Below, one piece after another: positions 20,124-30,797 of a stretch of DNA of 64,000 nt. Source of the DNA: Ramazzottius varieornatus (Eukaryota; Animalia; Tardigrada). The stretch's first letter is position 1, and every line of letters starts with the position of its first letter. The notes below the pieces were generated by a model. The model was not told where the DNA came from. It did not search any database and saw only the letters and a list, made by a program, of their open reading frames with translations. The position numbers and the translations under genes were made by a program. The stretch lies in assembly GCA_001949185.1 (NCBI GenBank), contig BDGG01000007.1:1818730-1882729 (forward strand), in the 5' to 3' direction.

Positions 20124-23100
20124 CTAAATAAACGTAATGGTGTGCACTGAGGGTGCTAGCTCGGTCCGCTTTGTCCCCAGCTCGAGCTTGGCGGTCTCGT
20201 CCGCTCCCAGTTGCGCCAGATAGGTATGGTTGTATTGCTGATAGGGTTCGTTCATTTTGGTGTAGTACCCAGCGATATCGGTTGAGATGATTTCCTCCAA
20301 TCTTGAACGCAGTTGGCGAAACTGTGGACGGTTAGAGGACGAGATGGTCCAGCAAGACTTGGTGATGTCATATCTGAAAAGCAAACTCACTTGACCGCAT
20401 TGTGTTGCACAAAAAAATATAATTGTACAGTGTGTGTCCAGCTCACAAGTTATTGGGGCAGAGCGGTGGTTTTTCCAGGTGGTTGCCTGCCGCAAGCCAT
20501 TGGGCAAACTGGGTAACGCGACCGGCTAGGGTCACGTGCGAATATGGTACCAGTCCCAGCGAGAACATCTCCCAAAGTAGAACTCCATAGGACCACACAT
20601 CCGTCCTCTCATTAAACGAGAGGCTGGTAATGGCTTCCGGTGCCATCCACCGAACCGGAAGTGAGGCCTGTTAATGACATAAAGGTGGAAAGTTTGAAGT
20701 CATTCTACCTTTTCTTCGAAGGAAAAGAGGCTCTCACCGATTGTCCAGCAGTGTCTTGGACGTAATTCTCCTCAAAAAGTCTGGCCATTCCAAAGTCCGA
20801 GACTTTGGCTATTCTATCCTTGGTTAGTAGGACGTTGCGGGCAGCGATGTCTCTATGGACGATGCTTTTCAAGCTAAGGAACTCCAGTCCGCGGCACACT
20901 TGATAAGCAAAGTCGACGAGGTCGCTGGTTGACAGTGACTCCAGCAGAGGTGCTTTGACAAAATACGCAGACTGTCCAGTCAGCTCCAACACCACGGTTG
21001 GATTTGGCATCGTTGCGCTACTTGCGTCCACGAAGATATTGCCTTCTTGGTCTAGAAGATTGACAAAACTGGGTGTGTTCAGTCGGCAGTTGACCAGCCG
21101 GGACAGTAGTGAGCCCAGTTCGCACAGTTCCAGAAGCAGTGTGGGACAGTCTGTAACAGAAACATTTGCGACCGGTGTTTCATAGACACCAATAAGAAGC
21201 CGATGCAATCCATACAGGCACCACGTTACCCACCAGTCAGGACAATTCCCAGAAGGTTGACCAGATTCAGATGTTGGCCGGCTTTGATCATGACCCCAAC
21301 TTCTTTCTCGAACAAGGCTCTTTGTTGTGCGGCACCGTTGTTGAGCCGTGCAGTCAAGACTTTTGCAGCGACGGGAACGGTCCCAGTCAATCCATACAAG
21401 CCAGATGCAACCGCCGCGTACACCGTCCCGAATTCACCTTTACCAAGAACCACGGTACCTGCCAAAAACGTTTCATCAATATTTGGTTACCCTTTTGTAC
21501 CACCGGTTTTTATCGCAGCTAATCTACCCGTACAGAAGTTAATGATGGCACCGGTAGATTTGCCTACAAAGACCTGCATCCGATTCTTACTTCCTGCAAG
21601 TGAGCCAGATTGTTGTTCTAGCTTCCCAGCCATTCTAGGCTACCGTTGATGGCCATTGCGATGCCATCAGTAAATCAGAAGCGTACAGTCAGGCAAGAAC
21701 GTACTTTGCTGAAGTTTGTTTCGTGAAACGACGAACGGTTTCAAGTCCTTGCCGATTGGGAATCCGTAGTCTCGGGAGCTGATTGTAACAGATCTTGTAA
21801 TTAGGGGATGAGATCTGGACTGAACTTGCTGACGGCGCTTGTACCTTTGATACCACCAGCAGGCGACGGCTGCGCTTGTCAAGATTACAGTTGTAACCGG
21901 TATCGTGATGCCAAGAACGGTTGACAATGCCACTGTCGACTTCACGGGAGTTGTATCACCGTTTTCCGCTGGCAGCTGTTGGTTGACATCTTGCAGAATA
22001 TCATCGTATCCTCCTGCGTAACGAATGTTGGGAAAGGCTTTCCGGGCCTGCCTGAAATCCAGGCCATCTTTGACAGACCATCCAAATGCTTTTGCCGCCA
22101 AGTACTTTACGCTGGTGTTAGCCGCTCCGCTCCAAAAATGAATGACCACGCCCAAGGTAACATTGGCTGGCGCATATCTCGTACTACCATTCTCATCAAT
22201 GATGGTGGGAAAGTTGGCCGAAAGAAGGTCGAAGTAATTTTTCAAGACCGTAGTCTGGCCGTAGCTGTTGTATAGTGGAAGGTAAAAATCCCGAAGCCAG
22301 AAGGAATTGGCCCGGGGTGTTGACTGCGGACTGTCGATGACCTCCTCAAAATGCAGTTGCGTAACTTCGATATCACTAATTCCTCGGCACATATCATACC
22401 TGACCATGTCTCGAAGAGCGAACTGGTCGATTGATTGCATGGGGTTACCGTAAACTCCTCTGGCAAACAAGATGGTGATGGAGGACACACCCCAGGATAC
22501 GTTGATTCTGGAGGATGTGGCGTTGGTGCTCCACAACGTCCGTGTATCGCTGCCACAATCGAGGACGTGACGATAGTCATGGGTGGCTTCGACTTGCGTG
22601 GCCAAATGGCAGCCGTTGTAGCGTCCAACGTGGAAAACGGTGTAGAAGCGCGAGTCGTTTCTCTGGGAAAGTGGGCCGAAACGTTGCTCTGCGTACCGCC
22701 AGACCTGCCCGACGTACTCGAACAGCCACCTATTTACCGGCACATCACTGTCGCCTCGCCTTTGGGAGAGAAGCTCATCAAAATATACTGCAACGTGGTC
22801 GTCGTACGCAAAAAGGTTTAAAAGCTGCACATGCTCCTCCCAGTGTTCCTTCCAAGCTGCAGCCGGCGGTGAGGAGTGCCTCAAGCTACCGTTCCACAAG
22901 TCTTCTGCAATAGCACAGATTTTCTCCGGTTCGGTCGTTACTGCCCTTGGATCCGGACGTCCACAATGGCACGAACCGAGAAACCATCGAACTGGCCTCC
23001 GGACTGCCAACTAACTAGGGAGCGTAAAGACTTACGGAAGTTATGCTCCAACGGTTCCGAGTAGGTCGCACTGATTACATGGAGTTCATACTCATCCATG

Positions 23101-23777
23101 ACTGTCCTATTTGGCGCCGTATCGTCGCAGCCTATTAGGAGCCTGGTGAAAAGTTTCTCCTTGGGGATAGATAGCTGATTGGTGAAGTTGGCGATAGCCG
23201 TTCCATCGACCAAGCAGGCAAAATACTGGGGAGTCCAGATAAACTGATAGGTGCGGAATGAAGTGGGGTCGATGGCTGTAGGCCAGGTATAGTCGCGGAT
23301 ATCCAGCCAGACGCGGCTACTCGACCGGGCATCCACATAGTAGACGAAGCAGCTGGTGATTCTGGGGTTGACCTTCCAGAAAGAGAAGCCGGCAGTCGAT
23401 CCTCTGATGGGCATCGAGCAAGGATATTCCTGACAGTTCATGGAAACGAGATTGAACCCGCCACTGCTGAACCCATCCACCGGTAACTTGGCCACAAACT
23501 CGAACGTACCATACAAGAAAGGATGCCCTTTGGAGGATTCGGCAGTCAGTCTGATGTCGTTGCACTTCTGTGCTTCGCTGTCGCCCCAGAAGTCACGGTC
23601 ACACTGTATTCGGAGCTGACTGTCCTGAAGACTGGTCTGGTTTGACCGAATCCAGGTGTAGACTGGATCGTAGCAGTTTTCCCTCACCGTCAGGAAGTCC
23701 GTGCGGATACGGTTCAGACCTGAGCAGCACACCATCCTGGACCACGAAGCTAGTATGGTGACAATTATCAACCGCAT
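20124..23777 (-). CDS. Receptor tyrosine kinase A: signal peptide + GH16-like domain + bacterial-type domain + TM + PVR/FGFR-like split kinase (catalytic motifs intact); 6 exons
   Basis: Signal peptide '[12 protein letters not shown]'. GH16 motifs '[13 protein letters not shown]' and '[19 protein letters not shown]'. Phase-1 intron 22905-23035 restores the frame. TM '[23 protein letters not shown]'. Kinase [37 protein letters not shown]. Confidence 0.9.
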
Positions 23778-29300: not shown

Positions 29301-30797
29301 GGCGAGATGGGTTCCCGTTTCCGAAACTGGCAAGGAGGAGACGCCACCTGCACTTGAGCTACTATCAACCAGCGATCTCGTCGATTTCGCCTATCAAGTG
29401 TGCCGCGGATTGGAGTTCCTTAGCTCCAAGAATATTGTCCACAAAGACGTCGCGGCCCGCAACGTGCTACTGACCAAGGACAAAACAGCCAAAGTATCTG
29501 GCTTTGGACTGGCTAAGTTTTATGAAAAGATCTCCGTTCAAGACACTGGCGATCAATCGGTAATGCCTATCATACAATGGCGGTCATACGAACCGAGGAC
29601 TGTCAAGGTTCACATTGAATTTATCTCAACTGTTCATGGACCGGTTTTTTGTGTTTTGGCACCTGGGGTAGAATTGAGCGTTATTGTACGATGCGATAGG
29701 GCAACGCAGGAGCTTTACAGAAGTACCAGAAATCTTACGAGACCGAAGATATTGACGAGGGAACCAAGGGTGCGAGGAAGAAATCTCGGAAAGTCATACT
29801 TCTCAAACAAAGTAAAAAATGCTAACACAGTGAACATCAAAACTACAAATAACATACTTTCAAGAATGTAAAATGATAGAAAACCATGAAAACAAGTACA
29901 AAACAACTGACAAAGAGATTCAAAATCATGTGAAGTAAATCGCTCAGTAAAAAACCAGTATCATCCGGAGCGTTTTTTCTGGCTAGGGGCTCTAAAATTT
30001 CAAAGTGTTCTTGCCGGCTTCTTTGTGTGCGGTCTTTTGCGACATTTTCAGGTCCGATGCAGCTTTTGTGCACAACAACATAGGCCAATAAACGCCTTTT
30101 CGGAATTTTCGCAATAGTTAGGGTTCTATCTTGACAGTCCTCAATTGGTTTCCCAGTAAAGATAGAGGGTATTGATAGATTTACGGCTTGCCAGTGAGAG
30201 AGAAACACAACACCTACAGACATCGGCGAAACGCTGACGCAGATGTGAATGTTATCAATACTATCATAGTAATTTCCATGATCAAGCGGCTCTGTTGACA
30301 GGCGCAACTTGCGATTCAATGGATGGCACCAGAAGCTATTGCTTCATTGTCTTTTAACCAGTGCAGCGATGTGTGGTCATATGGTGTTCTACTATGGGAG
30401 ATGTTCTCGCTGGGACTAGCACCATACGGGCAAATGATACTGACTGGTCGGGTCGCCCAGTTTGGGGAATGGCTGGCTGCGGGCCATCATCTGGACAAGC
30501 CATCACACTGTCCCAACCAAATGTAAGCGGGTCTTTGTGATAGCATCTCCTGACTTTCAGTCATATTTACTGTCCTTTTGCAGGTTTAGAATAATGCAGT
30601 CATGCTGGACTGTGTCGACAATTGAACGGCCAACTTTTCAGGAGCTGCGGCGCAGCTTGGAGGACATTACTGCGGCCGACATTGCTGGCTACTACACAAG
30701 GTTGGACGAACCGTACGAACGATACAATCTGATAGCGTTGGAGTTTAGTGACAACGACAGAATCGCGATGGACGAAACTCTACTGGATTGTCCTTGA
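26369..30797 (+). CDS. Receptor tyrosine kinase B (paralogue of A; probable pseudokinase); exons approx. 26369-27101, 27234-28442, 28534-28767, 29171-29559, 30302-30522, 30584-30797
   Basis: Same architecture and intron positions as A. TM '[24 protein letters not shown]'. Kinase LGKGEFG and VAAK present, but HKDVAARN and KVSGFG replace HRD and DFG. WMAPE and DVWSYG present. Confidence 0.88.
28871..29117. mobile_element. MITE (Tigger/pogo type) in an intron of RTK B
   Basis: ~45-bp imperfect TIRs (cagcccggacgttcgaaatccgtaccaaattttcggatttc / gaaatccgaaaattggtacggatttcgaacgacaggactg) flanked by TA on both sides. Confidence 0.8.

Follow-up and report, generated by a model that had tools for sequence, protein, structure and literature searches.

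Head-to-head receptor tyrosine kinase genes with inactivated GH16-like and gluzincin-like ectodomain modules in the tardigrade Ramazzottius varieornatus

In animals, a glycoside hydrolase family 16 (GH16) fold that has lost its catalytic glutamates and has a role other than hydrolysis is known from the recognition proteins GNBP, bGRP and LGBP; GNBP and bGRP are soluble, bind glucan by an N-terminal CBM39 domain and act via protease cascades. The L-type lectin, LysM and malectin-like receptor kinases of plants combine a concanavalin A-like jelly-roll or dead-enzyme-like ectodomain with one transmembrane (TM) segment and a cytoplasmic kinase, which belongs to the RLK/Pelle Ser/Thr kinases and is of independent origin. 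Among animal receptor tyrosine kinases (RTKs), FGFR, PDGFR-VEGFR (PVR) and KIT have a kinase insert, the HRDxAARN tyrosine-kinase signature and ectodomains of Ig-like repeats. In this study, two neighbouring RTK genes, named gene A and gene B, which resemble each of these systems in part, were characterized in a stretch of 64,000 nucleotides of the tardigrade Ramazzottius varieornatus (GenBank assembly GCA_001949185.1, contig BDGG01000007.1, positions 1,818,730 to 1,882,729), hereafter the window; positions are counted from its first letter.

Genes A and B are recent paralogues arranged head to head, and all their parts align as inverted repeats with 71–89% identity. The ectodomain open reading frame (ORF) of gene B matched RvY_12496 (P0001, 1113 aa, 64% identical), which is the product of gene A itself, and also RvY_18525-2, encoded on another scaffold. 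Each protein has the plan of a type I membrane protein and is composed of a hydrophobic N-terminus, a jelly-roll of the GH16 fold, a second domain of approximately 300 amino acids, one TM segment and a split FGFR/PDGFR-like tyrosine kinase. We consider it probable that this head-to-head pair represents a family of paralogous RTKs in which two dead-enzyme ectodomain modules serve ligand binding and not catalysis. A preliminary description of the window had placed two genes at these positions and had assigned them a signal peptide, a dead GH16 domain, a second domain, a TM segment and a split tyrosine kinase. ORFs were found there on both strands and the architecture was borne out; the signal peptide is putative, as judged from the hydrophobicity of both N-termini. 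Coordinates of all parts are given in Table 1. The 2.6-kb spacer between the divergently transcribed genes is presumed to be their shared upstream region.

In comparison with the described systems, CBM39 was absent from the window ectodomains in the Pfam scan, which gave only a weak GH16 match, and the proteins differ from GNBP and bGRP in having a TM segment and a tyrosine kinase. No match to Lectin_legB (PF00139) was obtained in the Pfam scan of the window genes, and their kinase has the HRDxAARN signature, as in animal RTKs; the resemblance to the plant receptor kinases is thus one of analogy. The window kinase is closest to FGFR, PDGFR-VEGFR and KIT, but Ig-like repeats were not present in the window genes. 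Finally, gene B keeps the receptor architecture, has HKD and GFG in place of kinase motifs and lies next to a paralogue with intact motifs, a position that points to a function as partner, like that of ErbB3, PTK7, EphB6 and RYK, although gene B is not homologous to these receptors and its DFG to GFG substitution is different.

Domain 1 of the window genes was matched by the Pfam family PF00722 with 18.1 and 19.4 bits over 32 residues, below the gathering score of 22. Built from the six closest sequences, the profile A3 retrieved 29 PDB matches, nearly all of them GH16 enzymes (best match 4bow, E 3e-5). The AlphaFold2 model of domain 1 of gene B (predicted local distance difference test, pLDDT, 73.9; predicted template modelling score, pTM, 0.77) was compared with Foldseek, and the 50 best PDB matches were all GH16 proteins (E about 1e-9, TMq 0.5–0.68), comprising laminarinases, mixed-linkage glucanases and xyloglucan transglycosylases. 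In addition, the paralogues L003, L008, L011, L010 and L013 pass the PF00722 threshold, two of them strongly (E 1e-23, two GH16 domains each). These data confirmed the GH16 beta-jelly-roll fold predicted for domain 1 of genes A and B, and a mere chance resemblance to GH16 was ruled out by the A3 profile and the Foldseek matches. The GH16 scaffold motifs reported previously were found in both genes.

The position of the catalytic E-x-D-x(-x)-E motif reads differently. A real GH16 protein of this genome, L012, has PEIDVME where both window genes have STAGFSF (alignment A2); its segment 'WPALW ... TWPPEIDVMEARG' sets E-I-D-V-M-E over T-A-G-F-S-F, so that domain 1 retains a GH16-like fold and is no GH16 enzyme, in agreement with the carboxylate-free TAGFSF noted in the preliminary description. 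In this genome, no receptor-linked copy retains more than one of the three catalytic carboxylates. Activity of the window genes as glucanases or peptidases was rejected on account of TAGFSF and of the loss of HExxH in domain 2.

The motifs mentioned, including TAGFSF, lie within a block of 465 bp that is letter-identical in both paralogues (gene B, 26540–27004 on the plus strand; gene A, 23606–23142 on the minus strand). This block covers the GH16 core only, and identity falls to about 70% in its flanks within this exon. Judged from the sequence, gene conversion between these inverted neighbours seems to have taken place very recently. Contigs of the same strain are interrupted within the block, as would be expected of a repeat.

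The second domain had been recorded previously simply as such; its presence was confirmed, and the metallopeptidase fold of bacterial type, inactivated, had been missed. An exhaustive HMMER search with domain 2 retrieved 237 relatives (E down to 1e-52, 33–41% identity among the best matches), nearly all of which match residues 300–587 approximately. The named relatives are all bacterial (Paenibacillus, Pontibacter and a metagenome-assembled genome of Bacteroidales); they are often lipoproteins or cargo of the type IX secretion system, fused to CBM6, CBM35, F5/8-type C, FN3 or crystallin modules. Neither the tardigrade domain 2 nor the scanned bacterial homologues had any match in Pfam, NCBIfam or PDB sequence searches. 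The AlphaFold2 model (pLDDT 91.6) gave VIA matches with Z 11–12 over 205–256 residues to M1 aminopeptidases, LTA4H, lugdulysin and the M60-like O-glycopeptidases AM0627 and BT_4244, and also to M30 peptidases; the longest coverage corresponded to AM0627, BT_4244 and the uncharacterized 4fca. The Foldseek probability against the thermolysin-like catalytic fold was 0.99–1.0. The nearest Atlas clusters were all bacterial (0.97), with the addition of an M60 cluster (0.91).

Domain 2 thus shares its fold with the M60-like and other gluzincin peptidases and its sequence with an unnamed bacterial family that has the motif HExGHIVE, but the tardigrade copies are embedded in an animal receptor and have lost the first zinc histidine and the catalytic glutamate. 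In the HExGHIVE columns, gene B reads W-A-V-S-H-I-G-I and gene A W-G-V-S-S-I-T-I; HExxH is absent from the tardigrade receptor copies, and H-E-x-G-H-I-V-E is present in 28–29 of the 41 aligned non-tardigrade homologues. According to the model, domain 2 is an inactivated gluzincin (M1/M60-like) fold of an otherwise bacterial, unnamed family of secreted proteins. A quick tree grouped the five tardigrade copies linked to receptors in a single clade (SH-aLRT 99) among bacterial rows, and the pattern fits an acquisition from bacteria followed by fusion.

Three further observations concern this domain. About a quarter of the sampled bacterial members in alignment A1 (for example P0005, P0012, P0047 and P0073) also lack HExxH, and the bacterial family therefore seems to have lost catalysis repeatedly as well. 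At the locus L020 (G000:C4:271457-272275), a gene that lacks a kinase encodes only a homologue of domain 2 together with a TM segment and a short tail; it stands nearer to the bacterial consensus, has NEIGV in place of HExGH, and may represent a stage between a bacterial gene acquired by transfer and the fused receptor. At the locus L019 (G000:C10:62427-62927), the domain 2 and TM portion of the C19 paralogue RvY_18525 is repeated in part and almost unchanged, without the remainder of the gene, probably through the recent duplication of a fragment.

The kinase exons matched Pfam PF07714 with E 3e-20 to 3e-23 per exon (3e-23 for gene A). The nearest solved kinases are FGFR1/3, PDGFRA, FLT3 and KIT, and the kinase domain is interrupted by some 50 inserted residues. 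The split kinase of PVR/FGFR type reported for both genes was therefore recovered; the earlier reading had overlooked the altered motifs of gene B. In gene A all catalytic motifs are intact (HRD, DFG, WMAPE). Gene B has the tyrosine-kinase fold with an incomplete set of motifs, HKDVAARN (29440) and GFG (29500) replacing HRD and DFG. Among the five closest paralogues GFG occurs only in gene B, and HRD and DFG are conserved in the other three that share its ectodomain type. Without the DFG aspartate or the HRD arginine, gene B would most probably be a pseudokinase. Its spliced transcripts occur in runs of four studies, and comparison with a second strain shows 21 silent and 14 replacement changes; a rough estimate from these counts is a dN/dS ratio of about 0.2. 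Because gene B is expressed and silent changes exceed replacement changes, it is considered to be maintained, most likely as a pseudokinase partner.

For the structure of gene B, contigs assembled from four public runs, each belonging to a different study, were aligned to positions 26200–30900, the exons were searched singly, and frame and codons were counted by position. The six exons sum 3000 nt with no internal stop, that is, 999 codons and the stop codon, and all five introns are bounded by GT..AG and keep the frame. In contigs of the three runs X1, X2 and X7, the GT..AG joint 27101|27234 marks where exon 1 ends; further contig joints were recorded at 28442|28534, 28766|29170 and 29558|30301. 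Contig X2 record 11 (1954 nt) joins the GH16 exon to the exon of domain 2 and the TM segment, and contig X1 record 3 (1856 nt) joins the latter to all four kinase exons and continues beyond the stop; as both overlap by about 590 nt, ectodomain and kinase are placed on one gene B transcript. The confirmation of the exon joins by transcripts that had been called for was thereby obtained for gene B, and the view of ectodomain and kinase as separate genes was rejected. Because intron 1 is in frame and 132 nt long, exons 1 and 2 had been read earlier as one continuous coding ORF of 696 aa, which in fact holds this intron. The contigs start at about 26295–26305 and extend to 30900, including the 3' untranslated region. 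In gene B, a basic stretch comes after the 23 hydrophobic residues of the TM segment. The public protein set yielded no full model of this gene, only a fragment of 390 aa.

Contigs of X1, X2 and X7, from three studies, differ from the window at about 45 places (about 1%) and those of the 2016 run X13 are identical to it; at least two strains or populations are therefore present in the public data. Contig matches were also obtained at 29036–29120 and 30095–30147, inside introns 3 and 4 of gene B, which continue on both sides into unrelated sequence; these stretches probably belong to a short repeat that is expressed at other places.

Gene A is annotated as RvY_12496, a model that has introns at the same five places as gene B. 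This model splices gene A at 20148 into exons of a neighbouring seven-helix-like gene (19914–19669 and 19492–19385, minus strand; region 19385–20148), whereas the own frame of gene A stops at 20124. RvY_12496 is probably an over-merged gene model.

Table 1. Position and content of the features of the receptor gene pair in the window, and architectures of the related loci in the genome of R. varieornatus.
Feature	Position or locus	Strand	Content and basis
Gene A	23777-20124	minus	annotated as RvY_12496
Gene A exon 1	23037..23777	-	hydrophobic N-terminus and GH16-fold domain; annotated start 23735, in-frame ATG 23777
Gene A exon 2	21700..22902	-	inactivated gluzincin-fold domain, TM segment, juxtamembrane region
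Gene A exon 3	21453-21235	-	split tyrosine kinase
Gene A exon 4	21151-20738	-	split tyrosine kinase
Gene A exon 5	20667-20446	-	split tyrosine kinase
Gene A exon 6	20372-20124	-	split tyrosine kinase
Spacer between genes A and B	23778..26368	.	2.6 kb; geometry of both genes
Gene B	26369-30797	plus	ORFs and spliced contigs
Gene B exon 1	26369..27101	+	hydrophobic N-terminus, GH16-fold domain, TAGFSF at catalytic position; ORF, AlphaFold2/Foldseek, alignment
Gene B intron 1	27102-27233	+	132 nt, in frame, no stop; GT..AG
Gene B exon 2	27234..28442	+	gluzincin-fold domain (about 27236-28138), TM segment, then KKKRGQR, juxtamembrane region
Gene B intron 2	28443-28533	+	GT..AG, contig joint
Gene B exon 3	28534..28767	+	kinase N-lobe (GKGEFG, VAAK); Pfam PF07714
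Gene B intron 3	28768-29170	+	GT..AG, contig joint
Gene B exon 4	29171..29559	+	kinase insert and catalytic loop, HKDVAARN (29440), GFG (29500); Pfam E 3e-20
Gene B intron 4	29560-30301	+	GT..AG, contig joint
Gene B exon 5	30302..30522	+	kinase C-lobe (WMAPEA, SDVWSYG)
Gene B intron 5	30523-30583	+	GT..AG, contig joint
Gene B exon 6	30584..30797	+	kinase end (CW motif), C-terminal tail, stop codon
GH16-like and gluzincin-like	C7 (x2), C19 (x2), C4		kinase just downstream
Two GH16-like domains	C3 (x2), C11		kinase just downstream
One GH16-like domain	C6		kinase just downstream

A genome-wide search with domain 1 yielded twelve places. At nine loci the GH16-like ectodomain exons have one of the closest kinases of the genome immediately downstream, so at least nine RTK genes with three architectures exist in the genome of R. 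varieornatus (Table 1). The ectodomains of the family are 14–31% identical to that of gene B, and the kinase exon of the nearest paralogues is 42–60% identical to that of gene A. Other ectodomains were observed on the same kinase clade: L018 (G000:C1:6030000-6038500) has a match to the leucine-rich repeat (LRR) family LRR_8, and L016 (G000:C6:469500-477500) has no Pfam match. Exchange of ectodomains on a common kinase backbone seems to occur often in this genome.

When the ectodomain, domain 1 by itself or a tandem-GH16 paralogue served as query, word-based homologue searches retrieved only R. varieornatus proteins, these blanks being weak given the length and word limits of the searches. A metagenomic fragment, P0095, which is unplaced, is 34% identical to domain 1. 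The Atlas search with the paralogue P0179 gave no cluster combining GH16 and kinase among clusters of at least 50 members. No paper on GH16 or Glyco_hydro_16 together with tyrosine kinase was found in a full-text search, and the holozoan tyrosine-kinome paper PMC8662651 makes no mention of glycoside hydrolases or tardigrades. RTKs with GH16-like ectodomains thus appear to be undescribed. The novelty claimed in the preliminary description stands as regards the literature. Public databases give the proteins only as hypothetical, but RvY_06820, an unnamed protein and one of the two paralogues with strong GH16 matches, already carries PF00722 and PF07714 in public precomputed annotation.

With respect to function, the GH16-like and gluzincin-like modules would most likely act as putative ligand-binding surfaces and not as catalysts, and dimerization driven by the ligand would switch on the FGFR/PDGFR-like split kinase. 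Genes A and B may pair, and gene B would signal only as the partner of an active receptor, by analogy with ErbB3 and ErbB2. A ligand that bears glycans, either a polysaccharide or a glycopeptide, is conceivable in view of the descent of both modules from enzyme families directed at carbohydrates or glycoproteins; this is put forward tentatively, at less than even confidence.

Several points weigh against this reading or restrict it. The flanking tryptophans of real GH16 (WPALW, TWPPE in L012) are replaced in every receptor-linked copy, so that a canonical -1 subsite is unlikely; at the level of sequence, this argues against classical beta-glucan binding by domain 1. In insect GNBP and bGRP it is the CBM39 domain and not the dead GH16 domain that binds glucan, and therefore the GNBP analogy predicts no binding of sugar by a dead GH16. 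Dead-enzyme folds also serve protein–protein contacts, which makes an endogenous protein ligand equally possible. The single-polypeptide architecture of gene A would follow from the annotated model, and that of gene B from the contigs, whose runs are presumed to be RNA, as guessed and as the spliced GT..AG joints argue. Some kinases that have lost the DFG aspartate keep residual activity, and the pseudokinase status of gene B is a prediction. Finally, regarding breadth across animals, the RTK family has so far been found only in R. varieornatus, apart from the single metagenomic fragment P0095.

Two explanations for the role of the ligand-binding modules were weighed, one in which they sense glycans and one in which their ligand is endogenous, and both are about equally likely. 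In the first, the genes would encode pattern-recognition receptors, in which the dead GH16 domain, perhaps jointly with the dead glycopeptidase-like domain, binds cell-wall glycans of microbes, fungi or algae and signals directly by the tyrosine kinase, replacing the recognition proteins that tardigrades lack. Besides the origin of both modules, this possibility, which we regard as doubtful in that specific form, agrees with the fusion of the bacterial relatives of domain 2 to the sugar-binding modules CBM6, CBM35 and F5/8-type C, and with the number of genes and the faster divergence of the ectodomains than of the kinase exon, a pattern common in immune receptors. The nearest architectures to P0179 by language-model features are plant legume-lectin receptor kinases (0.89), which is taken as a lead only. 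Mapalo et al. 2020 (PMC7056985) reported no GNBP1/3 or PGRP-SA/SD homologues in tardigrades, did not find the canonical NF-kB pathways and asked about novel immune mechanisms; this reported absence of GNBP and PGRP homologues favours such a receptor. The loss of the sugar-stacking tryptophans in all receptor-linked copies and the role of the dead GH16 domain in GNBP and bGRP, described above, stand against it.

In the second explanation, held to be no more probable, the RTKs would serve development or homeostasis and bind an endogenous ligand, either a protein or a matrix component, and the dead folds would be scaffolds for protein contacts, by analogy with the jelly-roll ligand-binding domains of Eph receptors and the MAM domains of ALK. 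It is favoured by the proximity of the kinase to the growth-factor receptors FGFR, PDGFR and KIT, by the loss of the sugar-contact residues, and by the presence of transcripts in runs of four unrelated studies, probably reflecting constitutive expression. Moreover, the kinase clade bears LRR ectodomains too (L016 and L018 being the loci listed), which fits general shuffling of ectodomains and not a dedicated glycan sensor. However, the fast divergence and the lineage-specific expansion are unusual for core developmental receptors.

A more ambitious proposal, which we judge unlikely, is that of a class of tardigrades' own in which the dead glucanase and a horizontally acquired, dead glycopeptidase-like module sense glycans or glycoproteins of microbial or fungal cell walls by a pair of active kinase and pseudokinase. 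It appears equally improbable that this class substitutes for GNBP/PGRP and the NF-kB pathways and constitutes the animal counterpart of the plant lectin and LysM receptor kinases.

An artefact of gene models or decaying duplicates, that is, separate genes or gene B as a pseudogene, is very improbable, since in spite of the public fragment of 390 aa, the lost DFG aspartate and the annotated gene A model extended into the next gene, all exons of gene B are connected in frame by spliced contigs and give 999 codons free of stops, silent changes exceed replacement changes between strains, and the order of ectodomain, TM segment and kinase recurs at nine loci.

The preferred reading, a family of RTKs with two dead-enzyme modules in the ectodomain, adds to a group of animal proteins that is usually divided into about 20 classes according to the ectodomain, none of which combines a dead glycosidase with a dead metallopeptidase of bacterial type. 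If glycan sensing is true, these receptors would be the first animal parallel to the plant lectin receptor kinases and a candidate answer to how tardigrades recognize microbes without GNBPs or PGRPs. Even with an endogenous ligand, they would represent modules of bacterial type wired into an animal signalling receptor, the repeated recruitment of inactivated enzymes as receptor ectodomains, and a young pair of active kinase and pseudokinase in which sequence exchange by gene conversion may be ongoing.

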